Positions 19,701 to 49,546 of a stretch of DNA of 49,546 bases are shown here, in pieces. The notes beneath the pieces were generated by a model that was not told the origin of the DNA, made no database searches, and saw only the letters and a list, made by a program, of their open reading frames with translations. Both the position numbers and the translations under genes were made by a program. Source of the DNA: Basidiobolus meristosporus CBS 931.73 (lineage: Eukaryota > Fungi > Basidiobolomycota); the NCBI GenBank assembly GCA_002104905.1, contig MCFE01000654.1, forward strand, positions 1-49,546, read 5' to 3'. Positions within the stretch are counted from its first letter, which is position 1; every line of letters begins with the position of its first letter.

Positions 19701-20668
19701 ATACTGCACAGATCCAATCCATTTGCCAGCGCTTCCCAACCCTTTCGCATACAATCCGTATCACCAAGCGTTGGTTCTCTGCACATATGTTGGCTCCTCA
19801 TTTCAGCGAAGAGCTGATCGAGTTGATTTGTGCTTATGTTTACCTCTACCCTGGCGCCTGGTCCGAACCTGGAAGCGGTTTCGTCGGCTTCAACCGTGTT
19901 CTCAAACTGGTCACCTCACATGACTGGAAGAACGAGCCACTCATCGTTGACTTGGACAACTCCATCAAGAATAGCGAGAAGGAAGAGATCCTCCAGAAGT
20001 TCAATGAGCTGAGAAAGAATGATGAGCATTGCAAGCATAGCTCCATGGTGGTTGCCACTAGCAAAGACCTGGACGGCTCCTGCTGGAGCAAGGAATCTCC
20101 ACAAGGAGTCATTCTGGTCAGAGCCAAGATGCTGGCCAAGGCCACGTTGAGCTGTATGATGGACGCTGTCAACCAAGGATCCGTTAGCTCCCTCAAGAAG
20201 ATCTTCGCTACGCCCCTCCAAGACTACGATTTCTTGATCAAACTTGACGCCGAAAAGTGCACTCGCTATTTCCAGAGATTCAAGCCTGACGTCAAACTCA
20301 TCAAGAGCAAGGGAGAGAAATACCGGAATTTGGTTCTAGAGCAGAATACCAGCGATGCCGCCAACACCAGAATTGGATTCGACCCTGTGCAGCTGTACCT
20401 GGCCGAGATCAAGGAGCTCTACAGCGACATGATCGTATTTTTCCACGATACCTTCGGTGGACACATGATTGCTGGAGTGTGGAAGCCTTCACAACTGAAG
20501 GCCAAGCCCTGGAAGGTGAACGCCGGCTTCTCCAGTATCCCGAAAATCGAGGAGAACAAGAACAAGAAGACCCCACTGATCCTGCCCAACATCCCCGACA
20601 TCCTCTCTGAGGTGGAGAGACTGGGCGCTGGATTGGTTACCGAGATTGTGATTCAGAATGAACACTAA
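16777..20668 (+). CDS. UTP22: U3 snoRNA-associated protein 22 / Nrap (NOL6)
   Basis: LFHSNLFKLQIAELLSEV, IGSYPLKT, NYRYFYKRAYY, FRKLWGDKAELRRFKDGSIVESVVW, SGRWPDDL and KRWFSAHML. Acidic N-terminus, several short introns. Confidence 0.96.
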
Positions 20669-21193
20669 GCTTGCCCTCGATGCCACCGCTATTGTACTCG
20701 CTTCTAATTTCCCCCATCGCATGTGAGCCAAGTGCCCCGCTTCATCAACATAGATTGACGTTTTTATTTCGTACTATAACCTTCATAGCTTGAGTGTGGT
20801 TGTATCCCTATTACTTTGTTGTTAATAAACCATTTAGTCGATTGCTTGTAACTGACGCTAAGCCACCCACCCCTCGCCGGAAGGAATTCCATTTGGTGCG
20901 ACTGCCGAGGTGCACCAAGAGATGGATAATCCTTTTCTCTGCTGAAACTGGCGCTGTGATACGCTGATTTTTGCGTTTCCATGGTTGTTGGGGGGGGGCA
21001 GAACGCATTTGGTCCATGTCACACGATTTTGCAGTCTTCCAATTTTTTCACGATTTTTTTTGTTTCCAATGGGCCAAGATTGGCGGGAGGAGTTGGTGGC
21101 GATAGTTTATAAGCACTATGCCGGTCACCCTCGACCTCACCCTTGGCTCACCAAGATCCTTCGTGTCTTCCTACCAGCCTCTCCTTTAACAAC

Positions 21194-23047
21194 ATGACTG
21201 CTGAAGAATATCAAGGTGCCATTGGTATCGATCTCGGTACCACCTACTCATGCGTTGCCGTGTGGGAGGGCGAGCGTGTGGAGATCATCGCCAACGAGCA
21301 AGGTAACCGTACCACTCCCTCCTACGTTGCCTTCACCGACAGCGAGAGACTTATCGGCGAGGCCGCGAAGAACCAAAGCGCCATGAACCCACAGAACACC
21401 GTCTTCGATGCCAAGCGCTTGATTGGCCGCCGTTCCGATGACCCATCCGTCAAGAAAGACATGGCTAACTGGCCTTTCACCGTCGTTGACAAGGATGACC
21501 AACCCTTCGTCCAGGTACAATACCAAGGCGAAACCAAGGAATTCTCTCCCCAAGAGATCTCCTCCATGGTCCTGGTCAAGATGAAGGAGGTTGCTGAGGC
21601 CAAGCTGGGCAAGGCCGTCCAAAAGGCCGTCGTCACCGTCCCTGCCTACTTCAACGACTCCCAGCGCCAAGCTACCAAGGATGCTGGCTCCATTGCCGGC
21701 CTCGAAGTCCTTCGTATCATCAACGAGCCTACCGCCGCCGCCATCGCCTACGGTCTCGATTCGAAGACCAACACCGAGAAGAATGTGCTCATCTTCGATT
21801 TGGGTGGCGGCACCTTCGATGTCTCCCTCCTCACCATTAACGGAGGGATTTTCGCCGTCAAGGCCACCGCCGGTGACACCCATCTTGGTGGAGAGGATTT
21901 CGATCACACCCTCCTCGAGCACTTCAAGCAAGACTTCAAGCGCAAGCACAAGTTGGACCTCTCCGACGATGCCCGTGCTGTCCGCAGATTGAGAACTGCT
22001 TGCGAGCGTGCCAAGAGAACCCTGTCCTCCCTGACTCAGACCACCGTCGAAATCGACTCCCTCTACCAAGGTATCGACTACCAAGCCAACATCACCCGTG
22101 CCAAATTCGAGGAGCTCAACAACGCCTTGTTCGACAACACCATCGAGCCGGTCAAGAAGGTCCTCAAGGACTCCAAGTTCGCCAAGAGCGAGGTCGACGA
22201 GATCGTCCTTGTCGGCGGTTCCACCCGTATCCCCAAGATCCAGTCTCTTCTCCAGGAGTTCTTCGACGGAAAGGAATTGAACAAATCCATCAATCCCGAC
22301 GAGGCGGTTGCCTACGGTGCCGCAGTCCAGGCCGCGGTGTTGACCAACACCTCCGGCTCCGAGAAGACCCAGGACCTTCTTCTCCTTGATGTTGTCCCCC
22401 TCTCCCTCGGAGTTGAGATGGAGGGTGGTGTCATGGCAGTCGTGGTTCCCCGTAACACCCCCATTCCCACCATCAAGAAGAAGGTCTTCACCACCGCTCA
22501 CGACAACCAAACCACCGTCGAGTTCCCCATCTACGAAGGTGAGCGTCCCATGACCAAGGACAACAACTTGCTTGGCAACTTCCAGCTCAGCGGTCTTCCA
22601 CCTGCCCCTCGTGGATCCCCCGAGCTTGAGTGTACTTTCGACCTCAACGCCGACGGTATCCTCAAGGTCACCGCACAGGAGAAAACCTCCGGTCGCAAGG
22701 CCAACATCACCATCTCGAACAGCTCTGGTCGTCTGAGCGCCGCCGATATCGATCGTATGATCAAGGATGCGGAGAAGTTCAAGGACGAAGACAAGAAGGC
22801 CGAGGCTCGTGTCCAGGCCAAGCAGGAGTTCGAGTCCTACATCTACCAAACCGAGAGCTCCCTCTCCGACATGAACGTCGCGTTGAAGATGAAGCGCGGC
22901 GACAAGGAAGCCGTCGAGGGTGCCCTCTCGGATGCTATGGAGTGGTTAGACCTCAACGCCAGCACCGCCTCCAACGATGAGATCTCCACTCACCATCGCA
23001 AACTCCAGAAGACCGTTACCTCCGCTTTCCGTAACCTCTATAAATAA
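21194..23047 (+). CDS. SSB1: Ribosome-associated Hsp70, Ssb type
   Basis: [24 protein letters not shown] and [11 protein letters not shown]-type signatures. No C-terminal EEVD (ends [12 protein letters not shown]). Intronless with strong codon bias. Confidence 0.95.
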
Positions 23048-31790: not shown

Positions 31791-32867
31791 ATGGCTTTTG
31801 GTTGGTGTCACCCCTTTGCTTCTAGCCTCCCTTCTTCGACGGAACACTAACCCTTTTGATGAATCTCTAGAAAATCGTGGCGGTCGTGGTGGTGCTCGTG
31901 GTGGTGCCCGTGGTGGTTTCGGCGGTGGTCGTGGTGGTGCTCGTGGCGGCTTCGGCGGTGGTCGCGGTGGAGGCCGTGGTGGCTTCGGTGGTGGTCGCGG
32001 TGGTGCCCGTGGCGGCCGTGGTGGTGCTCGTGGCGGTGCTCGCGGTAATTATCTTGACGAGTTCGATATCCGAGAACCAGTGGACTAAATTGATACGTAT
32101 TTGCAGGTGGCCGTGGCGGTGCTCGCGGTGGTGCCGGACCTAAGGGCGGCAACAAGGTTGTTGTCGAGCCTCACAGACATGCCGGTGTCTTCATTGCCCG
32201 TGGTAAGGAAGATCTCTTGGTCACCAAGAACTTGACTCCCGGAGAATCCGTCTACGGTGAGAAGAGAATTTCCGTTGAGGGACCTGAGGGTACCAAGACC
32301 GAATACCGTGTCTGGAACCCCTTCCGTTCCAAGTTGGCTGCCGGTATCTTGGGTGGTGTTGATAACATCCATATCAAGCCTGGTTCTAGAGTTTTGTACC
32401 TTGGTGGTTCCAGCGGTACCACTGTTTCCCACGTTGCCGATATCGTTGGTCCCGAGGGTATCGTCTACGCTGTCGAGTTCTCTCACCGCTCCGGCCGTGA
32501 CTTGATCAACATGGCCAAGAAGCGTACCAACGTTATTCCTATCATCGAAGATGCCCGTCATCCTCACAAGTACCGTATGCTCATTGACTTGGTCGATGTC
32601 GTGTTCGCTGATGTTGCCCAGCCCGATCAAGCTCGTATTATCGCCTTGAACGCCCACAACTTCTTGAAGGCCGAGGGTCATATCGTGATCTCCATCAAGG
32701 CCAACTGCATTGACTCCACAGTCGAGGCCGTCAAGGTGTTCGCTTCCGAAGTCAAGAAGCTTCAACAAGAGCGTATCAAGCCTCAAGAGCAACTTACCCT
32801 TGAGCCATATGAGCGTGACCACGCCTTGGTTGTCGGTGTGTACAGACCCACTCCCAAGAAAGCTTAA
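31791..32867 (+). CDS. NOP1: Fibrillarin (box C/D snoRNP 2'-O-methyltransferase)
   Basis: RGG/GAR repeat N-terminus, [39 protein letters not shown] and [10 protein letters not shown]. Introns 31801-31870 and 32045-32106. Confidence 0.98.
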
Positions 32868-33218
32868 GCTCCCCCAACGATACGATCGATGTTAATATAG
32901 CTTTGAATTTCATAATATTTCCTTGTTTCTAGTTGAAATGAATGCTGTTTCTTTGTTCTCCCCCTTGAATTGATTGTTTTCCTATCCTCCCACTCTTTCA
33001 TACTAGACCATGGTGAGTTCACCCTTGCACCATTTCGTTGAAGACTTCGACCAATTTCATCTCGATAGATCCGATGCTCCGATATACATCTAAATAAATG
33101 TTCTCATTTATTAATGGTTGATCACCAAAGTTCTGTCGAATGGTAGCAGAAACTGATGACATACGTAAGTTATGCTATATGCATACACTCAACTATCGTA
33201 CAGCAAAGTCCCAATTGG

Positions 33219-33332
33219 CTACGACATTATCCATCTTACCTTGAAGCACTTTGAGCTCGAATCGAAAGTGCTGATGATTTCAGGAAGTGTTACTCCATCT
33301 TTTGGAAAGTATGAGCGCAGATGTTGAAACAT
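33219..33332 (-). pseudogene. Orphan duplicate of dysbindin-like exon 1
   Basis: MFQHLRSYFPKDGVTLPEIISTF is identical to exon 1 at 37274-37192. It then diverges and stops, and no downstream dysbindin exons follow. Confidence 0.8.
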
Positions 33333-33539
33333 CGGTAGAGTTGGGTAAGCAATAGTGTGTAGTAGAGTACCACTTAGATAAGTAGTCTCAATCTTCATAT
33401 GCAAATTCCACCATCACCACTTGCTACGTCATAAATGAATCAATCTTCAAATCCACCTTAATCCATCTGGACTCATGCCTTCACTCATTACTCAACAACA
33501 ATCCAGTCATCGTACACAATAAGCCGATATCTTTGCAAA

Positions 33540-33540
33540 T

Positions 33541-33571
<31 letters not shown>

Positions 33572-33578
33572 CATATAC
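33540..33578. repeat. (CA)n(TA)n compound microsatellite, copy A
   Basis: acacacacacacacacacacatatatatatacatatacac; the copy at 37482-37530 is longer. Confidence 0.92.
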
Positions 33579-33755
33579 ACATTTATTTGATGTTGATACA
33601 TAGTAGGAAACTCAGCATGTACTACTGCTACTCTCGACGACATGAAATGGCTGCCTAGAAACGAGTGATTCGTTAGTCTCTTCGCACACTTGCATTGTTG
33701 CTGTGTGCACGACCACCGACAGTGCTCGTTCAGTTCTCCTGGCTCAAGTGACAAA

Positions 33756-33833
33756 CATCTCAGGGAACCTTTCCTCGTCACTGTATATCGGACGGCACTT
33801 CCTAATATGTTTTGGTTGATTTCATCATGTTAT
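33756..33833 (-). ncRNA. Box C/D snoRNA candidate, target unassigned (copy A)
   Basis: C box ATGATGA (33828-33822), D' CCGA, C' GTGACGA, D box CTGA (33763-33760). Terminal AACAT/ATGTT stem and outer GGCTCAAG/CTTGAGCC stem. Lies downstream of a GTAAGC donor. Confidence 0.75.
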
Positions 33834-34117
33834 GCCTGTCTCCTTGAGCCACTCCCACAAACTAAACAACCTCTGGCTTCTGTGATACGCGCACACTCGC
33901 TATCAGTGTTTCTTGCTTACCAGAGTTGCTCGCCGGGCTGTGTTCTCAGGATACATGGGTCACTCCTGGCAGTGCGGTGTGTTCATGTGCTTGCTATACA
34001 TTGCTTTACTGTAGAAATACATTAGTATTTGTCTCTCTCATTCCGAGTACTCAGTCTCGGCACAGCTCATCATTTGCTGTGCCCTGACTGATCAGCTAGG
34101 GTAGCGTTGTTGCACGT

Positions 34118-34207
34118 AGTTCAGACATCCAAGGAAGAAATTGCCAGCATCGGACTCTCGTCCTTCGGTGGAAACTGCGAATTGGTGTCGGTTTTTCATC
34201 ATTTACG
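34118..34207 (-). ncRNA. U14: U14 (snR128/SNORD14) box C/D snoRNA, paralog a, copy A
   Basis: C box ATGATGA; domain A ATTCGCAGTTTCCAC, antisense to 18S GUGAAACUGCGAAU; domain B TTCCTTGGATGT-CTGA, antisense to 18S ACAUCCAAGGAA; CACGTA/TACGTG terminal stem. Confidence 0.95.
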
Positions 34208-34443
34208 TGTTCACCCCTCCCCCTTTCAGGTCAACAACGCTACTCTCGCTGATTTGTAACTGTGAACTATGCCTACCTGTTCTGTTGCCTCTTGGACCTC
34301 ATTTATCACCAGGATGTTGCTTTCATTATATACTACGTGGTACTTGTGTGCTGTAGAAACCATGAGTTAGCTCGTTATTCTCTTCATTCACTACGCGAGT
34401 AGAGACCAGGCTCCGGTTTCTCGCTAGTAGGGGACTGCTTCAA

Positions 34444-34533
34444 TGTTCAGACATCCAAGGAAGAAATTGCCAGCATTGGACTCTCGTCCTTCGGTGGAAA
34501 CTGCGAATTGGTAAATTGCTTTCATCATCTGAA
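34444..34533 (-). ncRNA. U14: U14 box C/D snoRNA, paralog b, copy A
   Basis: Same domain A and B guides and C/D boxes. Flanked by a GCTAGTAGGGG/CCCCTACTAGC stem. Confidence 0.95.
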
Positions 34534-34791
34534 GATGTCCCCCTACTAGCTTGCTCCCGGTGCAAGCCTATGGCTCTCGTTGCTTACCTGGTGCTTGTTG
34601 ATAGTCCTGCTATCCACCTTGCTCAGCTATCGTGCTGATCCGCGTATTTACATACAGTACACTGTTGGTCCTATTCATCATTCTAAACATCATGGTTAGC
34701 TAAAGGCTCACACAATCCACCCATCACATACTCCGGATGTCAGGAAGTCATTCCTCAATTGGTAGCATGTCAGCATGAGCTCGAAACTCTT

Positions 34792-34905
34792 ACGGTCAGT
34801 CAATCATACTGGCAAGTATAAAACACCCTCAGCGAAGGGCATTCCGGTTGTATCTTCATGGTCGATAAGACGGGTTGAAGACATATTTGGTTATCGTCAT
34901 TCCGT
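34792..34905 (-). ncRNA. snR190: snR190-like box C/D snoRNA, paralog a, copy A
   Basis: C box ATGACGA, internal TCGACCATGAAGA and CTTGCCAGT elements recalled from yeast snR190, D box CTGA, ACGG/CCGT terminal stem, linkage to U14. Confidence 0.72.
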
Positions 34906-35164
34906 TCTTTCCTTGGCCCTCTCGTGCCTCTCCCCCGCTCTCACTGCCACTGCTACCAATTGACTCCTGCCTTCCTGTTCGCATCACCCAGTAAACTCGA
35001 AACATTTGCTCACCTTAGTATCTGTTAGGTCTGCGGTCTTGGTAACTTGTGATGAGTCCTGCTCGTGGCCGTTTCTACCTCGAGACCTGTAAATGGTTTC
35101 CAGATTAGTACTCTGCCTCAAACTGACTGATACCAGCTGTCTTGCAGCTTGGCTAACAATGTAT

Positions 35165-35278
35165 GCGGTCAGTGAAGTATACTGGCAAGTATGAAACACC
35201 CTCAGCGAAGGGCATTTGGGTTGTATCTTCATGGTCGATAAGACGGGTTGAAGACAATTTTGGTGTTCATCATTCCGC
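35165..35278 (-). ncRNA. snR190: snR190-like box C/D snoRNA, paralog b, copy A
   Basis: C box ATGATGA directly after a GTAAGC donor, same internal elements, GCGG/CCGC terminal stem. Confidence 0.72.
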
Positions 35279-35526
35279 TTACATTGCTGCCGTCAAGTCG
35301 ACAAACAGCCTTCCCTCCACAGTCACTCTCGAGGCGAGTGTCTGGGAGATGGGCCTGCGGGTTGGACTGGACTGGACTGGACTGAACTGAACTGAACTTA
35401 AAACTCACCTTATCACTACAAGCACCGAGTTGTCATTGTGTGCTGCGACTAGAAGAAGTGGTTTGTTGAGAAGTCATCGAGGTTGCTTTTATCCCATCGC
35501 TCAACAGCAAACGAAATCATTGGAAG

Positions 35527-35543
35527 AATTTTTTTTTCATCGC
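35527..35543 (-). promoter_or_regulatory. Composite PAC/RRPE-like element (GCGATGAAAAAAAAATT), copy A
   Basis: Resembles the yeast ribosome-biogenesis motifs GCGATGAG and TGAAAAATTT. Lies ~40-50 nt upstream of a GATAAAAG TATA-like box of the snoRNA host transcript. Confidence 0.4.
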
Positions 35544-35777
35544 ACGAGCATTACAGGGATCCCTGAATACACTAGATCATTGATAACGGACTATTGGGGG
35601 AATAAAGAAATCAATACGACACACTATCCATGATCTCCAGAAATATCTAGAAATTTCCCATTTCTCGATATGTCGAATAATTAAAATGGATCATAAAACT
35701 AGGTCATCTACTTTATGTTTACAAATGTGCGAGGAAATATTGATGGTGGATATTACGACGGATACTACAAGAGGGAA

Positions 35778-37274
35778 TTAAAAATCATCATCGACATAAT
35801 CTTCATCCGGAATAACTAGTAAATTTGTCTCCTCCTCTTTGGATGGACTAGCAGTATGGTCTATAGCGGTGTTCTGATAAGTGTGAGCTAGAAAGTGTAC
35901 GAGAGCAAGGGAGTTGATCGAATCGCTAACCTCTTCGTCACTGATATCCCCCAGGAAATCATTCAGTTCATCTTGATTATCTTCTATCACCAGACTTTCC
36001 AAGTTCGGCACTGAGGCTATGCTTGAGGTTCTTGATGTTGCTATAAGAATAACAATACACATTAGATACCGATAAAGCAAACATTACGTCGGAAAGAACA
36101 ATTACTTGAGTTGAATGACATCTCGCTATTCTTCCGGTACATTTCCATTTGATGCTCGAAATTTCTCTGATAAGCCGTTCTTTTGCGCGACATGTTATCG
36201 CGCAATGTCTTTTCCAGCTGCACCTCCATCGCAGCTTTCTTATCGGCATACCGGGCCCTAAATAAATGGATGATTAACGCCCTTACTCGGTCTAAACGAT
36301 CCAAATCTTCCCCGATGTATTTACTTCTGCTCGTTCTTGTACGTTTCGAATTCCCGGATTTTCGCTGCTTTCCACTCTTTGAATTCATTTTCTTCGGCCT
36401 GCTCTAACAGCTGAGAGAATTTGGAGTCGATCCACTCAGCCTTTCGTTTCAGGTTGACTACCAATGTCGCTCAATTTGGTGGCGAACGGGTAGAGATTTG
36501 CTGGAATGCACATACCTATAGTCCCCTTGACCTCCTCCACCACCTCTTTGACCCCCGATAGGTGGTTGAGTTCCCTTTTGAACTGTTCACAGGAATTGTA
36601 ATGCTCCTCGCACTTGCTGCGTACCTCAGTGATTAAATTATCCGCCGCCTAAAGAAAGATTCGAGGGACGTATGTATACATATTTGCTTTCCCCGCCACC
36701 AAGATCAAGATGAAAACACCTACGCTGGCCAAACGAGCATTCTCACTATTGCGAGCTTTGATATGGTTCCATTCGGCTTCGTACCTAGCAAGTGGAGAAT
36801 TGAGTATGCTGGAGAACTCCTAAAGTATGCGAGCAAAGGTGGTCGTACTTCTTGGCCAGGATCAAACCACAATCAAGGTTGAAGGTAGAATACTCCGCCG
36901 TCGTGTTAGGGTGGGTGGAGGGCGCAACGTTACTCGCTCCGGAAGCGTTGTTCAAAACCGAGCCGAAATGTTTCGAGATTTCCGAACGTAACTTATTCAA
37001 CTTGCTCGACCTACACAAGAAAGGACGAACAGGTCAGGAAGGTGCAAGCTCGGAGGCTATACTCAATCTAACTCGTCTCTACCCTAAGTTTCCTTGTTGC
37101 CCTTCTGCTGAGCTAATGCAAAAAATGTCAGGAACGTTATGTGTACCACCTTTGGTAAAGAAAGCTTGGCGCTCGAGTGAGTGTGAGGTACCTTGAGTTC
37201 GAACCGAAGGTGCTGATGATTTCAGGAAGTGTTACTCCATCTTTTGGAAAGTATGAGCGCAGATGTTGAAACAT
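35778..37274 (-). CDS. Dysbindin (DTNBP1/BLOC1S8)-like coiled-coil protein, ~8 exons
   Basis: Spliced product MFQHLRSYF..NLDCGLILAKKYEAEWNHIKARNSENARLASAADNLITEV..FKEWKAAKIREFETYKNEQ..RKRTAYQRNFEHQMEMYRK..SVPNLESLVIEDNQDELNDFLGD. This parallels dysbindin (GLxLLSRYEDTW..QKFFEEAFQQDMEQY..DQEALDVFL). All inferred introns are GT-AG. Confidence 0.75.
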
Positions 37275-37481
37275 CGGTAGCGTTGGGTAAGCAATAGGGT
37301 GTAGTAGAGTACCACTTAGATCAGTAGTCTCAATCTTCATATGCAAATTTCACCATCACCACTTGGTACGTCATAAATGATTCAATCTTCAAATCCACCT
37401 TAATCCATCTGGACTCATGCCTTCACTCTTTACTCAACAACAATCTAGTCATTGTACACAATAAGCCGATATCTTTGCAAA

Positions 37482-37482
37482 T

Positions 37483-37521
<39 letters not shown>

Positions 37522-37530
37522 CATATACAC
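37482..37530. repeat. (CA)n(TA)n compound microsatellite, copy B
   Basis: Longer allele of the repeat at 33540-33578. Confidence 0.92.
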
Positions 37531-37703
37531 ATTTATTTGATGTTGATACATAGTAGAACTCAGCTTGTACTACTGCTACTCTCGACGACATGAAATGGCT
37601 GCCTAGAAACGAGTGATTCGTTAGTCTCTTCGCACACTTGCATTGTTGCTGTGTGCACGACCACCGACAGTGCTCGTTCAGTTCTCCTGGCTCAAGTGAC
37701 AAA

Positions 37704-37781
37704 CATCTCAGGGAACCTTTCCTCGTCACTGTATATCGGACGGCACTTCCTAATATGTTTTGGTTGATTTCATCATGTTAT
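37704..37781 (-). ncRNA. Box C/D snoRNA candidate, target unassigned (copy B)
   Basis: C box 37776-37770, D box 37711-37708. Identical core to copy A. Confidence 0.75.
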
Positions 37782-38065
37782 GCCTGTCTCCTTGAGCCAC
37801 TCCCACAAACTAAACAACCTCTGGCTACTGTGATACGCGCACACTCGCTATCAGTGTTTCTTGCTTACCAGAGTTGCTCGCCGGGCTGTGTTCTCAGGAT
37901 ACATGGGTCACTCCTGGCAGTGCGGTGTGTTCATGTGCATGCTATACACTGCTTTACTGTAGAAATACATTAGTATTTGTCTCTCTCATTCCGACTACTC
38001 AGTCTCGGCACAGCTCATCATTTGCTGTGCCCTGACTGATCAACTAGGGTAGCGTTGTTGCACGT

Positions 38066-38155
38066 AGTTCAGACATCCAAGGAAGAAATTGCCAGCATCG
38101 GACTCTCGTCCTTCGGTGGAAACTGCGAATTGGTGTCGGTTTTTCATCATTTACG
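38066..38155 (-). ncRNA. U14: U14 box C/D snoRNA, paralog a, copy B
   Basis: As 34118-34207. Confidence 0.95.
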
Positions 38156-38390
38156 TGTTCACCCCTCCCCCTTTGGGTCAACAACACTACTCTCGCTGAT
38201 TTGTAACTGTGAACTATGCCTACCTATTCCGTTGCCTCTTGGACCTCATTTATCACCAGGATGTTGCTTTCATTATATACACTGTGGTACTTGTGTGCTG
38301 TAGAAACCATGAGTTAGCTCGTTATTCTCTTCATTCACTACGCGAGTAGAGACCAGGCTCCGGTTTCTCGCTAGTAGGGGACTACTTCAA

Positions 38391-38480
38391 TGTTCAGACA
38401 TCCAAGGAAGAAATTGCCAGCATTGGACTCTCGTCCTTCGGTGGAAACTGCGAATTGGTAAATTGCTTTCATCATCTGAA
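38391..38480 (-). ncRNA. U14: U14 box C/D snoRNA, paralog b, copy B
   Basis: As 34444-34533. Confidence 0.95.
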
Positions 38481-38738
38481 GATGTCCCCCTACTAGCTTG
38501 CTCCCGGTGCAAGCCGATGGCTCTCGTTGCTTACCTGGTGCCTGTTGATAGTCCTGCTATCCACCTTGCTCAGCTATCGTGCTGATCCGCGTATTTACAT
38601 ACAGTACACTGTTGGTCCTATTCATCATTCTAAACATCATGGTTAGCTAAAGGCTCACACGATCCACCCATCACATACTCCGGATGTCAAGAAGTCATTC
38701 CTCAATTGGTAGCATGTCAGCATGAGCTCGAAACTCTT

Positions 38739-38852
38739 ACGGTCAGTCAATCATACTGGCAAGTATAAAACACCCTCAGCGAAGGGCATTCCGGTTGTAT
38801 CTTCATGGTCGATAAGACGGGTTGAAGACATATTTGGTTATCGTCATTCCGT
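38739..38852 (-). ncRNA. snR190: snR190-like box C/D snoRNA, paralog a, copy B
   Basis: As 34792-34905. Confidence 0.72.
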
Positions 38853-39110
38853 TCTTTCCTTGGCCCTCTCGTGCCTCTCCCCCGCTCTCACTGCCACTGC
38901 TACCAATTGACTCCTGCCTCCTGTTCGCATCACCCAGTAAACTCGAAACATTTGCTCACCTTAGTATCTGTTAGGTCTGCGGCCTTGGTAACTTGTGATG
39001 AGTCCTGCTCGCGGCCGTTTCTACCTCGAGACCTGTAAATGGATTCCAGATTAGTACTCTGCCTCAAACTGACTGATACCAGCTGTCTTGCAGCTTGGCT
39101 AACAATGTAT

Positions 39111-39224
39111 GCGGTCAGTGAAGTATACTGGCAAGTATGAAACACCCTCAGCGAAGGGCATTTGGGTTGTATCTTCATGGTCGATAAGACGGGTTGAAGA
39201 CAATTTTGGTGTTCATCATTCCGC
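39111..39224 (-). ncRNA. snR190: snR190-like box C/D snoRNA, paralog b, copy B
   Basis: As 35165-35278. Confidence 0.72.
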
Positions 39225-39468
39225 TTACATTGCTGCCATCAACTCGACAAACAGCCTTCCCTCCACAGTCACTCTCGAGGCGAGCGTCCGGGAGATGGGC
39301 CTGCGGGTTGGACTGAACTGGACTAGACTGAACTGAACTTAAAACTCACCTTATCACTACAAGCACCGAGTTGTCATTGTGTGCTGCGACTAGAAGAAGT
39401 GGTTTGTTGAGAAGTCATCGAGGTTGCTTTTATCCCATCGCTCAAGCAGGAACCGAAATCAGTGGAAG

Positions 39469-39485
39469 AATTTTTTTTTCATCGC
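39469..39485 (-). promoter_or_regulatory. Composite PAC/RRPE-like element, copy B
   Basis: GCGATGAAAAAAAAATT upstream of a TATA-like box at ~39433-39426 and the first host intron (GTGAGT..CCCGCAG, 39349-39301). Confidence 0.4.
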
Positions 39486-39958
39486 ACGAGCATTACAGGG
39501 ATCCCTGAAAACGCGATACCCGTCAATACCCATTATTGGACGTCCTAATGTTTGGTCGTGGCGAGAAATTTTTTCTCGAACCAAGTGGAATTTTTCCCAC
39601 CGACATCCCACGCAGGGAAATCATCGAATGCGCTTGGTTAAACCCGGTCGAAAATTAGGTTTAGCACTTAGGGATCATGGCCAATAACAATTCGAAAGAA
39701 CCTTTATATTTTACAAAATCTCGTATAATCGTGATACACTAGCAACAAACAAATCCAGACTCAAAATTCCACGCAAAACTTCCGTATAAAGTACGGTCAC
39801 AACTGGACAAAGCCAAAACTGAAAATTACAGAAATGAGTACACACGATTACTCCGCGCCCTGGACTGGTAAGGTAGGCGAGATGGGGGGGGGTAAGGACG
39901 TGGGCGAGGACGAGGGCGTGGGCGAAGAGTAACCAAGGAGTATGGAGTCTATCTCAAT

Positions 39959-41327
39959 TTACATGTTAAATATTGTCTGACCCTCACTCGCGTAGTCTGA
40001 ATTACGGTAGTTGTTGTTCGGATTCGAGCCATAGATCGGACTGTTGAGATCATCGTCGGTGACGATGCCCAAAGGCGAGTGAGGGGACGGCGGAAGGGAT
40101 GGGTTCATGGCTTGGTTGTAGGAATGGAAGTTTTCGGGAGACATCTGGAGTGGACAGCATGGGGTTGGAGTTCGGTTGGTTTAGGTAGTTGGTCTCCATC
40201 TGGATCTGTAAACCATTCCGCGCGAAGCTGTTCTGCTGATATGTCTGGCCGTTGGGGATGGTGGGGGATGGCTGGAGATTGTTCTGACCCGGAATCCGGC
40301 CGTTAGACGACACGTTCAGCTGCATGTTATGGACCATATTGTTGGAGCCCTCGGGGCTGGTGATAAAGATGGGCGGCCTGTCGCCTTCGTTCTTTGCTTC
40401 CGAACTAGCCTGGCTCAAATCGGTAGGAAAGGCTACCGGGAAGCAAGCATTAGACCGCTGTTATTGAAATCAATGAATGGCGCGTCAGGAAGAACTCACT
40501 AGGGATAGACGGATTCTGCTGGTGTATATGGTCCATCATGTTTTTGATCAATTGCTGTTGGATGGACTGGCGTTTCCTTGTCTCGGTCAGCTCCCGAACC
40601 ACCTCGGAGAGGTTGGCTTGGAGATGGGCGATTCTTTGCATCATGTCAGACTGGGTCACCTGCATCATGGTGATATGGGCATGTAAATCCCCGGTCTCCC
40701 TACGCAGCGTTTCCGACTCCATCGCTTTCCGCTTAATATCATCCAGGAGATCGGGACGACCGCGCAGGAACTTTGGATGAGAGAACTCCCAGATTTGGTT
40801 TTCGGCAAGGGTACGATGTCCTCTTGGGGATTTGTTCACCTTGTGAAAACCGTACCTGTAGGTGTGGGGGGTGGAAGAAACGGCTAGTTTAGTCACTGGG
40901 CAGCAGCAAGCTATCTGGGCTAGAAAACCCTCGGGGACTTACATGTTGAGCTGCCTCACAAAGCTGGAGAAGTTGTTGTGTTTGAAATGCTTCGGGAGTA
41001 CTTCCCTCGAAAACTCCATGATGTTGCACACGATGAAGGAGGTCCCGGAGTAATTCCAGGAAATCAGATGTTGGTACTGCTTGTCGATCACCATGCTAAG
41101 GGAACGTCCCAGGTTAGTGGGTGCTGGACAGGCCCAGAAAGAGTACATAATTACCCGTGCAGTTTGTGGACGAAATTGTTGTTCATGATTTTGACGTTCG
41201 GAGAGGGGGAGGATTTGTTGGAGGGGCTTTCGCTGATGGTGGGCGACATAGGAGCCTGTGGCGTGCCCACGTGAACGTCGGTTGGTTGAGGAATTTGTAG
41301 GCTCTGTACAGTAGCGGTCTGGTTCAT
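39959..41327 (-). CDS. HSF-type DNA-binding transcription factor (no receiver domain seen)
   Basis: NNFVHKLHGMVID..LISWNYSGTSFIV..FSREVLPKHFKHNNFSSFVRQLNM/YGFHKVNKSPRG..WEFSHPKFLRGRPDLLDDIKRK, then a coiled coil. Apparent frame break at ~40145-40180. Confidence 0.9.
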
Positions 41328-41579
41328 TGTAGCTGGGGTGGGGTGGTATTCAAGCGAAAGGAGGACAACTATGGGTAGAACATATACACACCGTACCAGG
41401 TATCCGATTGATATCAGCAAGGAAGGGTCGAAGGGGAATGGTGTCTACGAACAAACAAACAATATCAAGGTTTGCCGGTGGGAAAAGTTGCGCTCCAGAA
41501 TCCCTGAATGGAAGGGAGGAAAATATATATCGCACACCAGTCATTCACCAACAAGTTTATGCCAGTAGCTTAGTTCTCG

Positions 41580-42545: not shown

Positions 42546-42984
42546 AAATGCTCTCTTGAGATTCTATTTATAGGATACTTACAGGATATTTGCTAATTCT
42601 TGAATTAGGAAAATCCTGGAATTTTCCTACATGACCTCCAATGCTTTCTTGATGATTTGATGATGCTTTGTAGATATTTCAAAAAGGTCCAACTTGAGTT
42701 CATGCTTTCTTGTAGTTCCATATCACTTCCAGACTCTCAAATTGACTTGTAATAAGTTGTGAGTTCTTGCAGCCTGCAATGTTTATAGCATTATAATCTC
42801 TCATCTTGTATTTACCTCTAAGGCAAAGGAATGGTATTACTGCTGCGGGAACCCTGATTTGATGTTGAGCTCAAAATTAAGCCAGAACTGGGTTAAAACA
42901 TTAGTCCAAGCCAAGGTTCTTTAAACTCTCACCTTGTATTGCATGATAACTGCTAATTTGCTGCATTGGTATCTGAGCTTTCTT

Positions 42985-43197
42985 TGTTGTAAGAGTCTTG
43001 GAGATATTAGAAGTGATTGGGAGAATAAGTTAATTATGTGGTTTTCACTTGATGATTTATTGAATGTACAAGTAGTATAGATACTTTTACATAGTCTCGG
43101 CAAATAAAGCAAGTTGAATTTGCTCAGGAAGGCCCTAAGAACCTGTGTGCAAAGTTTGGGGCTACTTGGACAACTTTGAGAATTTTCATATTCTGGG
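42985..43197 (-). mobile_element. Older truncated LTR of the copia family (3' part, inverted)
   Basis: Starts TGTTGTAAGAGTC, the reverse complement of the LTR end. Visibly more diverged than the intact LTRs. Confidence 0.9.
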
Positions 43198-43473
43198 TGT
43201 GGTAAAAATTTGTAATTCCACCTGAATATTCACCTAACTTAGTAACTTAGATCATTACCTTCAAATCCTAGAGAATACTGACCAAATTCCTTGTTGGGAT
43301 TTACTTAGAATATTTACCCAGAACATGAAAAATCTCAAAGTTGTCCAAACAGCCCCTAACTTTGCACACATGTTCTTGGGACCTTTTTTAATCTATTCTA
43401 CATGTTTGTAATGCCAAGACCCGGTAAAAGTATAAATACTACTTTTACATTCAATAATTCATCAAGTGAAAAC
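43198..43473 (+). mobile_element. Older truncated LTR of the copia family (5' part), interrupted by the full element
   Basis: Starts TGTGGTAAAAATTTG and follows the LTR sequence to ..GTGAAAAC, where the intact 5' LTR begins. Confidence 0.9.
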
Positions 43474-46400
43474 TGTTGTAAAAATTCGTATTTTCCACCT
43501 AAATATTCACCTAACTTAGTCACTTAGATCACCACCTTCAAATCCTAGAGAATACTGACCAAATTCCTTGTCGGGATTTACTTAGAATATTTTCACCAAA
43601 ATACCAGGTACCCAGAACATGAAAATTCTCAAAGTTGTCCAAACAGCCCCAAACTTTGCACACATGTTCTTGGGACCTTCCTTAACCTATTCTACGTGTT
43701 TGTAATGCCAAGACCATGTAAAAGTATAAATACTACTTTTACATTCAATAAATCATTAAGTGAAAACTACATAATCTACTTGTTCTCCAAATCACTTCCA
43801 ATATCTCCAAGACTCTTACAACAGGTTATGAGCCCCGAGCTGTCACTCTCTGCAATGTCTACTGCTGCTATTACTGGAATTTTTCCCTCTGCTGAAAAGT
43901 TGGATGGATCTAACTACCAAGTGTGGAAGGTGAAGATGAAGATGCTGCTACAAGAAAGAGGCCTTTGGGATATTGTCATGGGAGAAGAATGCCCCCCTAA
44001 AAACGTGGGAGAGGAAGCCTTAAAGTACCAGAAGAAAGAACAAAGTGCCTTTAACTGCATTTGCCTTAATGTCAAGGACAAATTGCTAATTCAATGCTCA
44101 AGAGCAAAAACGGCAAAGAATGCATGGAAGGCATTAGAAGACACCTACCAGTCATGTTCAGCTGCCAAGAAAATGTATCTGAGAAGAAAATTCTTTACTA
44201 CAAAGATGCTGCCAGGAGAAGAAATGAAAAATCTAATTAACAGAATTACCCTGCTGGTAGATGAGATGGAATCTGTGGGCGTACCAACTACTGATGAGGA
44301 TGTGATAGTTACCATCCTGAATAGCCTGACAGACAAGTTTCAGGGCCTTGTATCAGCCCTAGAGTCCAGAACTGAAGATTTGACATTAAATTACGTATAT
44401 GGAAGGCTCCTGGATGAAGAATTAAGAAAATCAAGCGCCAATAAGAAGGAAGAAGAAAATGCTTTAATAAGCAATGATAACCAACAAAGGAGGTACCCAA
44501 GACCCTACAAAGGCAACAACAACCTATTTTGCAACTACTGCAAAAGGAAAGGACACACATCAGACCGATGTTTCAAAAAGAGAGATTATCAGCAAAAGAA
44601 GCCTGAATATGGAAATGCTGCAACAACTGAAGATAGACTATTCATATCTGCACTAAATATGACCACAAACAAGGATTCTCAGACGTGGTATATTGACTCT
44701 GGAGCTTCCCAACACTTTACACACCAAAAAGAACTTTTTACCCAATATCAAGAAATTCCAATTAAGAAGGTTTTCATGGGTGACAATAGAACACTTGATG
44801 CAGTGGGAGAAGGAACTATCCAAGTAAACCTTAGAAGCAGTGAAGGAAGCCATACACTGACCTTTAAAGAAGTACTCTATGTACCAGAAATAGCCAAGAA
44901 CCTACTCTCTGTAAGCAAGGCCACAGCAGAAGGACTCAGTTTCAGTTTTGACAATTCTGGATGCAGGATCACTGATCAAAATGGTGCTCATATTGCTTTG
45001 GGCATCAGAGATCAGAATCTATACAAGTTGACTTATATTCCATCATATTTGGAAGCCAATATAAGTAACTTAAATGAAGAAACACCAATGCTTTGGCACA
45101 GGAGATTTGGACACATCAATTTTGATTATTTGCGCAAAATGATCAAAGATCAGCTAATTTCTGGAGTGAAAATTGATCCCCCAGCTAATTTGGAGCACTG
45201 TGAAGCCTGCATATATGGGAAACAAGCCAGACAACCGTTCAAGAGCTCTGGGTTAATCAAAACTAAGAAAAAATTAGATCTAATTCACTCAGATCTGTGT
45301 GGACCTATGCAAAATTTATCCTTAGGCGGGATGAAGTATTTAATCACTTTTATTGATGATTATACAAGATACACATGGGTCTACTTCATGGAGAGAAAGG
45401 AAGAAGCTCTGTCTAAGCTCAGGGAGTTTAAAGCCATGGTGGAGAGAGAAATTGGTGAAAAAATCAAGAAAATACGCTCTGACAATGGTGGAGAATATAC
45501 CTCAAAACTCTTCATCCACTTCTGCAAAATTCATGGGATAAAGCAAGAGACTACTGTACCATACTCCCCACAGCAAAATGGAGTAGCAGAACGAGCTAAC
45601 AGATCAATAATTGATATGGCAAGATCTATGATCCATGATCAAAAATTATCCTATGATTTTTGGGCGGAATCAGTTGCCACTGCTGTATATCTTAAAAATA
45701 GGAGTTATAACAGAATACTTCGTGATTCTACTCCATTTGAAGCATGGTATGGATACAGACCAAGTGCAGAACATCTAAGAATATTTGGGTGTACAGCATA
45801 TGCCAAAAAACTGGCCGGAAATCAGTCAAAATTTGAGCCAAAAAGTGTAAAATGCATATTTTTGGGCTACTGCAATGAGAGTAAGGCATACAGACTCTAC
45901 AATACCAAAGCAAAGAAGCTGATCAAGTCCAGGGATGTGTTGTTTGATGAAAATTCAAAATTTTCACAAAAAATGGCATCAGATGATGACAAAAATTTGA
46001 TCTCAAGTCCACCAATTGTCAGGATTGAATCAGAGCAAAACAATGAAAATTTTTTCACTCCAGAGGACTCTACAACCGTGGTTCAGCCAGAATCAGTGCC
46101 CAGGAATATCCCAGAAGTGATCATTCCAGTATCAAATGCCCGGAGACCAATCGGACAAGAAATAGCCCAAATTACTATATCAATGAGGGTACAAACTTAG
46201 CCTATGCCTATTCAGTCCATGTTGATGAACCCCAGACTGTAAAAGAGGCCCTAAATAGCCCTCAGACAAAGTTTTGGAGATCTGCAATGACTGAGGAATA
46301 TCAGGCCACTGATGGAAAATCAAACTTGGGACTTAGTCAAATTACCAATCAACCGAAAAATCAATTGGATGCAGATGGGTCTTCAAGACAAAATACAAGG

Positions 46401-48161
46401 CTGATGGTACAATTGAAAGATACAAAGCAAGACTTGTAGCCAAAGGATACTCTCAAACAAAAGGACTTGACTATACTGAGACCTTTGCACCGGTAGCCAA
46501 GTTTAATTCCATCAGATTAATATTGGCTATTGCAGCCAAATATAAGTTTTTTATTCATCAAATGGATGTAAAAACTGCATTTTTGAATGGAGAACTTGAT
46601 GAGGACGTGTATATGGACCAGCCTGATGGGTTTGTTGACCAAGATAACCCCCATTTGGTCTGCAAGCTTAAAAAGTCACTATATGGTCTCAAACAATCAC
46701 CAAGAGCCTGGAATTGCAAGATAGATTCTTATTTGGAATCTTTGAGTTTCAAAAGGAGTAATGCTGACTATAGTATATACTATAAGCCAGATAGAGCAAA
46801 TCCAGTTCTATTAGCTCTATATGTGGATGATCTTATTATAGCCACCAATAACCTAGAAACATTGGAAGAGACTAAATCCAGCCTATCTAAGGAGTTCAAG
46901 ATGTCCGATCTAGGAGAACTTAGTTACTACTTAGGGATTAAGTTCTCCATAGACAGAAGTACCCAGACTATTACCCTAAGCCAATCCAAGTATATTCAAG
47001 ATATACTAAAGAAGTACAAAATGGAAGACTGTAAACCGGCAGCTACCCCAATGGAGACAAACCTTAACTTGGTCAAAACTCAACCAAATCAAGAGAGCTT
47101 GGTGCCATCTGAAAGCCCTGACTTTCCTTATCAATCTATGGTCGGCAGTCTGATGTATATCATGCTTGGAACACGTCCAGATATCTCATATTCAGTGGGA
47201 GTTGTCAGCCAACATAATCAGAACTATGGATCTGATCATATTGCAGCAGTTAAGCGGATTTTTAGATACCTAAAAGGAACTGCTGATATCTGCTTAAGAT
47301 ACACTTATAAGGATTCAGAACAGGATCTTGTGGGATACTCTGATGCTGATTGGGGACAAAATTTAGAAGACAGAAGATCCACCACAGGATACACCTTTCT
47401 TTACTGTAAAGGAGCAATTTCATGGAATTCAAGAAAGCAACCAACCGTAGCACTTTCCACCACAGAGGCAGAGTATATGGCAGCCTGTGAAGCTACAAAA
47501 GAAGCAATGTGGTTAAGAAAGCTCTTTACAGATTTAGGCCTATGTCAAAAAACGCCTATTACTTTATTTCAAGATAATCAAGGATGTATACAATTAGGTA
47601 GAAATCCAACTTTTCATGCTAGAACCAAGCACATAGATATTAGACATCATTTCATACGTGAAGCTATAGAGAATAACTTAGTTAGCTTAGTTTACTGTCC
47701 TACAGATGAAATGATTGCAGACATATTTACCAAACCATTAGCTAGAGACAAGTTTGAATATCTTAGGTCAAAATTAGGACTAGTCAGTATGAACATTTAG
47801 CTGAGTGGGAGTGTTGTAAAAATTTGTATTTCCACCTAAATATTCACCTAACTTAGTCACTTAGATCATCACCTTCAAATCCTAGAGAATACTGACCAAA
47901 TTCCTTGTTGGGATTTACTTAGAATATTTTCACCAAAATACCAGGTACCCAGAACATGAAAATTCTCAAAGTTGTCCAAACAGCCCCAAACTTTGCACAC
48001 ATGTTCTTGGGACCTTCCTTAACCTATTCTACGTGTTTGTAATGCCAAGACCAGGTAAAAGTATAAATACTACTTTTACATTCAATAAATCATTAAGTGA
48101 AAACCACATAATCTACTTGTTCTCCCAAATCACTTCCAATATCTCCAAGACTCTTACAACA
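43474..48161 (+). mobile_element. Full-length Ty1/copia LTR retrotransposon (~4.7 kb)
   Basis: 350-bp LTRs at 43474-43823 and 47812-48161 with TGTTGTAA..TTACAACA termini and ~7 differences. PBS GGTTATGAGCCC at 43824; purine tract GAGTGGGAG before the 3' LTR; domain order gag-PR-IN-RT-RH. Confidence 0.98.
43828..47800 (+). pseudogene. Copia gag-pol polyprotein, interrupted by ~3 single-base indels at ~46150-46375
   Basis: CNYCKRKGHTSDRC knuckle, WYIDSGAS protease, LWHRRFGH..CEAC, IHSDLCGP / RSDNGGEY / QNGVAERANR integrase, MDVKTAFLNG and LYVDD RT, YSDADW RNase H. Confidence 0.9.
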
Positions 48162-48434
48162 AACATTATGATTGCTCACATCATGTACTGTCACATGAAT
48201 CTGCAAATGTCTATCTTACATGTTAGCACTGTTCATCTGAATGTATTACATTCCTCTCTGACATTGAAAAGTTGCATGTGATCTGTACTACCATGTACAG
48301 ATATGCCAAAGTATCTTCATTGTACAGCATCTGCAACATTCACTCAGACTTAGTTATTGATCATCACTTTTGCAGAGCAAATTCAGTAATAGCAGTAGTA
48401 GACATTGCTACAGAGTGACAGCATGCTCATAGTC
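48162..48434 (-). mobile_element. Degenerate PBS/gag 5' fragment of the same copia family
   Basis: The reverse complement gactatgagcatgctgtcactctgtagcaatgtctactactgctattactg aligns with ggttatgagccccgagctgtcactctctgcaatgtctactgctgctattactg at 43824 onward. Confidence 0.85.
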
Positions 48435-49546
48435 TGTTGTAAGAGTCTTGGAGATATTGGAAGTGATTGGGAGAACAAGTAGATTATGTGGTTTTCACTT
48501 AATGATTTATTGAATGTAAAAGTAGTATTTATACTTTTACATGGTCTTGGCATACAAACACGTAGAATAGGTTAAGGAAGGTCCCAAGAACATGTGTGCA
48601 AAGTTTGGGGCTGTTTGGACAACTTTGAGAATTTTCATGTTCTGGGTACCTGGTATTTTGGTGAAAATATTCTAAGTAAATCCCAACAAGGAATTTGGTC
48701 AGTATTCTCTAGGATTTGAAGGTAATGATCTAAGTGACTAAGTTAGGTGAATATTTAGGTGGAATACAAATTTTTACAACACTCCCACTCAGCTAAATGT
48801 TCATACTGACTAGTCCTAATTTTGACCTAAGATATTCAAACTTGTCTCTAGCTAATGGTTTGGTAAATATGTCTGCAATCATTTCATCTGTAGGACAGTA
48901 AACTAAGCTAACTAAGTTATTCTCTATAGCTTCACGTATGAAATGATGTCTAATATCTATGTGCTTGGTTCTAGCATGAAAAGTTGGATTTCTACCTAAT
49001 TGTATACATCCTTGATTATCTTGAAATAAAGTAATAGGCGTTTTTTGACATAGGCCTAAATCTGTAAAAGCTTTCTTAACCACATTGCTTCTTTTGTAGC
49101 TTCACAGGCTGCCATATACTCTGCCTCTGTGGTAGAAAGTGCTACGGTTGGTTGCTTTCTTGAATTCCATGAAATTGCTCCTTTACAGTAAAGAAAGGTG
49201 TATCCTGTGGTGGATCTTCTGTCTTCCAAATTTTGTCCCCAATCAGCATCAGAGTATCCCACAAGATCCTGTTCTGAATCCTTATAAGTGTATCTTAAGC
49301 AGATATCAGCAGTTCCTTTTAGGTATCTAAAAATCCGCTTAACTGCTGCAATATGATCAGATCCATAGTTCTGATTATGTTGGCTGACAACTCCCACTGA
49401 ATATGAGATATCTGGACATGTTCCAAGCATGATATACATCAGACTGCCGACCATAGATTGATAAGGAAAGTCAGGGCTTTCAGATGGCACCAAGCTCTCT
49501 TGATTTGGTTGAGTTTTGACCAAGTTAAGGTTTGTCTCCATTGGGG
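48435..49546 (-). mobile_element. Second copia copy in inverted orientation: LTR 48435-48781, PPT, RT/RNase H end (truncated by the window edge)
   Basis: Reverse complement of 47046-48161 with few changes, including TRP->TCP (CpG->TpG) and a 1-nt deletion near 49070. Confidence 0.96.

Follow-up and report, generated by a model that had tools for sequence, protein, structure and literature searches.

Five box C/D snoRNAs of the snR107/snR190, U14 and U49 types in a duplicated, probably non-coding host gene of Basidiobolus meristosporus

Analysis of a 49,546-nucleotide stretch of DNA from Basidiobolus meristosporus CBS 931.73 (contig MCFE01000654.1; the whole stretch is referred to here as the window) revealed five box C/D small nucleolar RNAs (snoRNAs) on the minus strand between 37700 and 39490. 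Two are of the snR107/snR190 type, two are U14 RNAs and one is of the U49 type. An earlier note on this DNA had described such an array, and Rfam matches with intact boxes, terminal stems and guides bear it out. The array is best explained as a non-coding host gene of the RNA polymerase II, UHG-like type, whose value lies in its five snoRNAs, one per intron; we give this reading a probability of roughly 0.85.

The snoRNAs were recovered by an Rfam scan of the window at gathering threshold, together with a permissive scan of 33000-40500. At gathering threshold the window gave four matches, all on the minus strand and all to RF04328 ("snR107, fungal C/D box snoRNA"). Two of the four lie inside 37700-39490, and the other two, with the same scores, are ~3.95 kb away. 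The five RNAs, in transcript order, are:

39106-39224, minus strand: snR107/snR190-type copy 1, in predicted intron 1 (RF04328, 47.3 bits against a gathering score of 44)
38738-38852, minus strand: snR107/snR190-type copy 2, in predicted intron 2 (RF04328, 52.9 bits against a gathering score of 44)
38393-38480, minus strand: U14 copy a, in intron 3 (SNORD14, RF00016, 51.5 bits, E 6.9e-9, gathering score 64)
38065-38153, minus strand: U14 copy b, in intron 4 (SNORD14, RF00016, 46 bits, E 2.2e-7, gathering score 64)
37706-37780, minus strand: SNORD49/U49-like RNA, in predicted intron 5 (RF00277, 31.7 bits, E 2.4e-4, gathering score 37)

Both snR107 matches span the full RF04328 model (1-118) and exceed its curated gathering score. 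The snR107 family, defined in S. pombe, has been published as the orthologue of S. cerevisiae snR190 and human SNORD12/B/C (Nat Commun 2025, PMC11971394), and the name "snR190-like" that the note had given to two of the RNAs is therefore correct. The fifth RNA, which the note had left unassigned, is a real snoRNA, and its match to RF00277 replaces that label with SNORD49/U49-like.

Comparison of the five RNAs revealed a consistent anatomy. The C box reads AUGAUGA in four of them and AUGACGA in snR107 copy 2, and all five have a CUGA D box and a terminal stem of 4-6 bp. The two snR107 paralogues are 90% identical; their antisense elements (ASE1 and ASE2), D' and C' boxes and internal hairpin are unchanged between the two, and their terminal stems differ in a compensatory manner (GCGG/CCGC in copy 1, ACGG/CCGU in copy 2). 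The U14 paralogues are identical over domain A, domain B and box D, and their central hairpins differ by one change. Domains A and B align to RF00016 at high posterior probability, with domain B directly before box D. The flanks of the two U14 RNAs are unrelated in sequence, yet each flank pair folds into its own stem. External stems of 14-17 bp enclose three of the five snoRNAs: snR107 copy 1 (~17 bp, -25.1 kcal/mol, more stable than all 500 shuffles), U14 copy a (-24.8 kcal/mol) and the U49-like RNA (-23.0 kcal/mol), with shuffle means near -9 kcal/mol. Two other candidates were rejected as chance occurrences. One is a C/D look-alike (AUGAUGA...CUGA) at 38570-38628 in exon 3, which has no Rfam match and is not aligned in the related species discussed below; the other is a hairpin with both boxes at 37986-38030, which has sub-threshold archaeal Rfam matches only and is likewise not aligned in that species.

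The features of the host gene around these RNAs are:

37500-39440 (ends approximate), minus strand: snoRNA host gene copy B, non-coding, with six short exons and five introns placed from splice signals
39338-39516, minus strand: promoter-proximal block including exon 1, ~82% conserved in related species C (a piece of an X4 contig, 33 differences)
39033-39349, minus strand: intron 1, predicted (GTGAGT...TACTAAT...CAG)
38630-38959, minus strand: intron 2, predicted (GTGAGC...GCTAAC...TAG)
38298-38534, minus strand: intron 3, splicing seen as a joint in run X3 (GTAAGC...GCTAAC...CAG)
37957-38223, minus strand: intron 4, splicing seen as a joint in run X3 (GTAGGC...TACTAAT...CAG)
37603-37868, minus strand: intron 5, predicted (GTAAGC...ACTAAC...TAG)
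37532-37537, minus strand: AATAAA polyadenylation signal past the last host exon, read directly

The spliced host exons total ~450-520 nt, and their longest open reading frame (ORF) is 30 codons. Branch sites of the CTAAC/CTAAT type lie 13-19 nt ahead of the YAG in all five introns, so that the branch point and acceptor that the note had placed after each snoRNA were found in every case. The distance from the snoRNA 3' end to the 3' splice site is 73-108 nt.

Evidence on splicing came from X3, one of six public runs marked "DNA?" (no run labelled as RNA was listed). X3 is nevertheless cDNA, because its contigs have eight short CT..AC introns removed in a neighbouring gene. In the host gene, an X3 contig passes directly from 38297 to 38535, skipping 237 nt with CT..AC ends on the plus strand at a depth of 978.7; this is the removal of intron 3. 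A second joint, 34011 to 38227, represents the join of exon 4 to exon 5 with its two ends placed on different copies of the gene; in the alignment of the copies, position 34011 of copy A is equivalent to 37958 of copy B. Altogether, cDNA-type contigs of X3 span 37562-38962 at depths of ~380-980. One snoRNA per intron, as the note proposed, is thus directly supported for two of the five introns, and introns 1, 2 and 5 are predicted from their sequence signals.

Of the donors named in the note, GTAAGC and GTAGGC are those of introns 3 and 4, but its choices for introns 1 and 2 are probably wrong. The GTAAGC at 39229, taken as the donor for the first snoRNA, falls inside the ~17-bp external stem of the first snR107 RNA. 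The GTGAGT at 39349, which fits the donor consensus, is the likelier donor of intron 1, and the block kept in the related species ends at 39338, just past it. For intron 2, GTGAGC at 38959 competes with GTAGCA as the predicted donor. The host transcript is probably polyadenylated, judging from its AATAAA. Right after this signal, a (TA)n(TG)n microsatellite is present in both gene copies (37478-37540 and 33536-33575), with an 8-nt indel between them.

The promoter-proximal block carries GCGATG.. and A/T-run motifs and one ATAAAAG, which may function in transcription of the host. Motifs of the GCGATG and A/T-run types were observed upstream of the host on the minus strand at 39440-39490 and 39570-39590 (GCGATGAAAAAAAAATT; GAAAAAATTTCTC), and they look similar to PAC and RRPE elements, which occur in the promoters of ribosome-biogenesis genes. 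Those nearest the host fall within the block shared with species C.

Several observations weigh against the account given above. The X3 contigs are unspliced through introns 2 and 5 (the latter in a contig covering 37562-37938), and one contig also retains intron 4. The stretch from exon 1 to exon 2 is not covered by any X3 contig, so the transcription start and the expression of the first snR107 RNA are predictions. The transcript data are the cDNA-type contigs of X3, and mature RNAs of 75-120 nt are likewise predicted. The U14 and U49-like matches come from the permissive scan and score under the Rfam gathering scores. For U14, the note's assignment is sustained despite this by the E-values and by the intact state of both domains that pair with 18S rRNA, and the deficit in the RF00016 alignment sits in the short central hairpin and spacer. 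Lastly, the rRNA pairings described below were judged on metagenomic ribosomal DNA (rDNA) loci and not on the rRNA of this organism.

Intron retention also bears on how the snoRNAs are released. Some or all of them might derive from internal promoters or from RNase III-type cutting of a polycistronic precursor, with introns 1, 2 and 5 unused. Models of this kind exist in the cutting of the yeast SNR190-U14 precursor and in the exonic U14 of S. pombe. The colinearity of X3 contigs with the genome across introns 2 and 5 would fit such a route, as would the long external stems flanking three of the snoRNAs, and the authors of the Neurospora study noted putative promoters ahead of each snoRNA of cluster V (PMC2780460). 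However, introns 3 and 4 are excised exactly at the predicted sites, and all five intervals share the same layout of donor, branch site and acceptor with the usual distance from snoRNA to 3' splice site. Intron-retaining contigs are moreover expected from pre-RNA and are uninformative on the main route. We consider release without splicing improbable, at around one chance in ten.

A different possibility is that the host is the protein gene immediately downstream, with the snoRNA introns being its 5'-untranslated-region introns. This gene (35797-37274, minus strand, ATG at 37274) lies between the host copies and has nine exons encoding a 319-aa coiled-coil protein. All eight of its introns (57-79 nt) were seen as X3 joints, and their donors are very degenerate (e.g., GTACCT, GTAGAG, GTTAGC). 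No Pfam family was found in the protein when its exons were scanned one by one, and these scans give no support to a "dysbindin-like" label. The gene is on the same strand as the host exons, and the duplicated segment described below takes in its first coding exon and ends at 37184, within its intron 1, which makes the two units physically close; copy A therefore has an orphan exon 1 (~33250-33332). Against a shared transcript, the last host exon is followed by an AATAAA, and X3 has no coverage in 37341-37539. The contig with the 37112 to 37192 joint (depth 234) explains ~106 nt of its bin, as estimated from the bin depth, which would put the start ~23 nt upstream of the ATG, and contig depths are ~920-980 for the host versus ~230-340 for the protein gene. 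In copy A, the same host structure is present without the gene body behind it, yet its snoRNAs are still perfectly conserved. This possibility is the least probable of those considered, and a separate non-coding host gene remains our preferred explanation.

The host gene is present twice, a point on which the note is silent. In a blastn self-comparison, the segment 37184-39509 is repeated at 33242-35567 (2.33 kb, 97.4% identity), so that ten snoRNA genes lie within 6 kb. The features of the second copy are:

33242-35567, minus strand: host gene copy A, with the same Rfam matches and scores as copy B
35160-35278, minus strand: first snoRNA of copy A, from Rfam
34791-34905, minus strand: second snoRNA of copy A, from Rfam
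34446-34533, minus strand: third snoRNA of copy A, from Rfam
34117-34205, minus strand: fourth snoRNA of copy A, from Rfam
33758-33832, minus strand: fifth snoRNA of copy A, from Rfam

Independent DNA contigs (runs X1 and X2) bridge the 1.6-kb spacer into both copies, with both junctions seen, and the loose end of these contigs matches the unique flank of copy A. The duplication of the whole 2.33-kb gene is recent. Of the 63 columns that differ in the alignment of the copies, not one touches the snoRNAs, which total 486 nt (binomial P 4e-7, or ~2.5e-5 by our own reckoning if indels are taken as single events). Both gene copies appear to be under purifying selection.

It might be argued that one copy, most likely copy A with no gene body downstream, is a silent recent duplicate that has not yet decayed. 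The copies are just 2.6% diverged, and the upstream flank of copy A diverges beyond ~35600. The sparing of the snoRNAs speaks against a silent copy, although gene conversion could also explain their identity, and the promoter-proximal block was included in the duplication. In addition, X3 contigs have the copy-A letter at 37949, 37995 and 38043 and are without the T that copy B has at 38226; at 38661, 38690 and 38920 they agree with copy B. This suggests that both gene copies are transcribed, with the reservation that the organism code of X3 differs and assignment to a copy is not certain. We regard a silent copy as unlikely, at slightly better than one chance in ten.

Contigs of a related species (species C, run X4) align only over the five snoRNAs and the block of promoter and exon 1, and the spacers are unalignable DNA. 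One X4 contig has a U14, 185 nt, a second U14, 157 nt and the U49-like RNA, the corresponding spacers in the window being 200 and 158 nt; in another, the snR107 copies are 257 nt apart versus 241 nt in the window. The four X4 substitutions shown in the U49-like RNA are all in spacers, with none in the boxes or guide. As the doublings of snR107 and U14 are common to species C, these internal doublings predate the split of the species.

Because the window holds no rRNA, targets were sought in 120 eukaryotic rDNA loci fetched from metagenomes by a P-loop pattern. Rfam confirms large-subunit (LSU) rRNA in two of the fetched loci, one of which has a small-subunit (SSU) start adjoining. The intergenic spacer of a fungal-type rDNA unit used as LSU reference (L095) also contains a 5S rRNA gene, at 3943-4061. 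The U14 domain A 12-mer ATTCGCAGTTTC has an exact complement in 26 rDNA loci and the domain B 12-mer CTTCCTTGGATG in 23, and in one locus a U14-domain match is followed by an Rfam SSU match.

The U49-like guide UAGGAAGUGCCGUC equals the SNORD49 family consensus over 14 nt. Its best LSU partner is GUCGGCUCUUCCUA, which is invariant in 64 loci and leaves one internal U-U mismatch; this mismatch is common to the SNORD49 consensus guide, since the two guides are identical. The guide of human SNORD49A/B, which directs 28S Cm4426 (PMC9941101), is likewise identical to the one here over 14 nt. S. cerevisiae is without a U49 counterpart (PMC2656528, table). For the guide at the D box of the U49-like RNA, GGAAAGGUUCC, no consistent rRNA partner was found among the fetched loci.

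ASE2 of the snR107 RNAs, AUACUUGCCAGUAU, equals the RF04328 consensus in both copies. Its only partner among the fetched loci was an 8-bp match to a AUAUUGGC-type sequence in a few non-fungal loci, the fungal-type loci lacking the 5' LSU.

The first guide of the snR107 RNAs (ASE1) is altered in both paralogues and in both gene copies, reading GUCUUCAACCCG versus an RF04328 consensus of GUCUUCUUUACCCG. The helix 73 target of this guide is yeast G2395, S. pombe Gm2483 and human Gm3878. ASE1 of S. pombe is the guide for Gm2483, a helix 73 residue of 25S rRNA, and ASE2 is required for 60S biogenesis (PMC11971394). With the universal helix 73 sequence CGGGGAAAGAAGAC (92 loci), the guide here forms only two short helices of 5 and 6 bp, separated by a 4x2 internal loop (-16.2 kcal/mol); neither copy has the continuous ASE1-helix 73 pairing expected of the snR107 family (yeast C2392-C2405, target G2395). 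With CGGGUUGAAGACA(U), in contrast, it forms 13-14 continuous Watson-Crick pairs (-23.5 and -24.3 kcal/mol). In five fungal-type loci this second site is 189 nt downstream of the helix 73 site and precedes the P-loop pattern by 8 nt. The alternative 25S site, CCGGGUUGAAGACAU, is 33 nt before the P-loop Gm, and the flanks CGGG...GAAGAC are common to it and the helix 73 site. The D' box is CUUA, and the fifth-nucleotide rule leads to the third G of CGGG, the same geometry as for G2395/G2483 at helix 73. We estimate the probability of a chance match of such length at the guide position at ~1e-3 or less.

Tentatively, and at somewhat less than even odds, we propose that the snR190/snR107-type RNA of this lineage has switched its first guide from helix 73 to this second 25S site 189 nt downstream. 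We hypothesize that the switch arose via a linker change from UUU(A/C) to AA, and that ASE2 keeps the chaperone contact. By the D'+5 rule, the switched guide would direct 2'-O-methylation of the third G of CCGGGUUGAAGAC, a site for which, to our knowledge, no guide is known. The Neurospora table has no guide entered near the predicted new G or near the U49 site.

Taken together, the processing route and rRNA functions of the five RNAs would be as follows. The primary transcript would be spliced and its lariats debranched, and exonucleases would trim each intron back to the small nucleolar ribonucleoprotein (snoRNP) core on the C/D kink-turn; the terminal stems, and in three cases the long external stems, may aid snoRNP assembly. 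U14 would pair with 18S rRNA, domain A acting in processing and domain B in methylation of the equivalent of yeast C414. The snR107/snR190-type RNAs would pair with 25S rRNA via their two antisense elements in early 60S assembly, and possibly act as methylation guides too. The U49-type RNA would direct methylation at the LSU cytidine that corresponds to Cm4426 of human 28S rRNA. As to its history, the gene bears old internal doublings of snR107 and U14 and has since been copied as the 2.33-kb segment.

The note had seen in this gene a kept snR190-U14 linkage with both members doubled, and this holds: the snR190-type RNAs are 5' of both U14s, as in yeast. It had also proposed that the linkage was rebuilt here in intronic form. 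This wording implies a derived state, but the same arrangement has been published in Neurospora crassa (PMC2780460) and Cryptococcus (bioRxiv 10.1101/2024.10.08.617225), and introns may be the older setting of the pair. In cluster V of N. crassa, CD16 is the snR190 homologue and CD37 is U14 (Liu et al. 2009, PMC2780460), and as here an snR190-type RNA precedes U14. The two lie in separate introns of one UHG-like non-coding host, are co-transcribed and have only short ORFs around them, much as proposed for the present gene. Each is present there in a single copy and with no U49-type member, whereas here both are doubled, a fifth snoRNA is present and the gene is duplicated. For CD16, pairing to the helix 73 site (Gm2357) is 13/0, unlike that of the first guide here, which is not continuous. 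In Cryptococcus, snR190 is in intron 1 and U14 in intron 2 of the argininosuccinate synthase gene, again in single copies but with a protein-coding host.

The S. pombe mamRNA-snR107-U14 gene (PMC11971394; PMC12508059) also has an intronic snR107 of the same Rfam family upstream of U14 in one precursor, and its snR107 corresponds to those here in ASE2, in where D' and C' are placed and in the stem-loop that comes after box C'. There, however, U14 is in the 3' exon and its release is aided by Pac1 cleavage, whereas U14 is intronic here. The S. pombe k-loop has a UAAAAC-type consensus motif and the loop here reads UACAAC; a role of Mmi1/Mei2 would therefore not be expected here. The S. cerevisiae SNR190-U14 dicistron (PMC8536666) has the same 5'-to-3' order in an intron-less unit cut by Rnt1 (as cited in PMC11971394). 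Yeast snR190 has two antisense boxes (to domains V and I) and is a 60S assembly chaperone (PMC8536666). The Y domain that yeast U14 carries, according to the literature and Rfam, is reduced here to a hairpin with a 6-nt loop. Human ZFAS1 (PMC11971394) resembles the present gene in having paralogous SNORD12, 12B and 12C in consecutive introns of a non-coding host. The copies of both partners and the U49-type RNA are together in the present gene; human SNORD12, U14 and SNORD49 sit in different host genes.

Other genes and elements were noted in the window. A fibrillarin (Nop1) gene at 31798-32867 on the plus strand, in which one exon (31864-32057) encodes RGG repeats and another the catalytic domain (Pfam PF01269, E 3e-102), is convergent with host copy A, its stop codon ~0.7 kb from the host 3' end; fibrillarin is the methyltransferase of box C/D snoRNPs. 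A gene for an HSF-type DNA-binding protein lies just upstream of host copy B (40050-41400, minus strand). Further away are genes for UDP-glucose pyrophosphorylase (9718-11064, plus strand), nucleoporin POM152 (12789-15431, minus strand), an Nrap/Utp22-type nucleolar protein (17924-20668, plus strand) and Hsp70 (21143-23047, plus strand). A copia-type LTR retroelement of low GC content (38%) occupies 42983-49546; it has ORFs for gag, integrase and reverse transcriptase, along with several repeat blocks in direct or inverted orientation. Lastly, 650-2484 and 3168-5014 form an inverted repeat of 1.85 kb, 97.7% identical, with arms 683 bp apart.

Intron-hosted snR190-type and U14 RNAs are already known in fungi, and the arrangement itself is not new. 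Modest interest comes from the doublings, from the presence of a U49-type RNA and from the altered guide, and of these the altered guide alone is possibly new; if the guide switch is true, it predicts a lineage-specific rRNA methylation beside the P-loop. The analysis adds ten snoRNA genes that were not listed before, the essential U14 among them, where the ORF track is blank, and it places a U49-type guide in a fungus even though S. cerevisiae has none. The gene also provides a natural case of growth in snoRNA dosage via two rounds of duplication. A protein-atlas comparison placed the DNA no more closely than fungal, Ascomycota/Zoopagomycota-like; Basidiobolus is an early-diverging fungus. 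If that placement is right, linkage of snR190 to a following U14 extends well outside Dikarya. A host with a single snoRNA in each intron would then probably be ancestral in fungi, and the yeast dicistron without introns a derived form.

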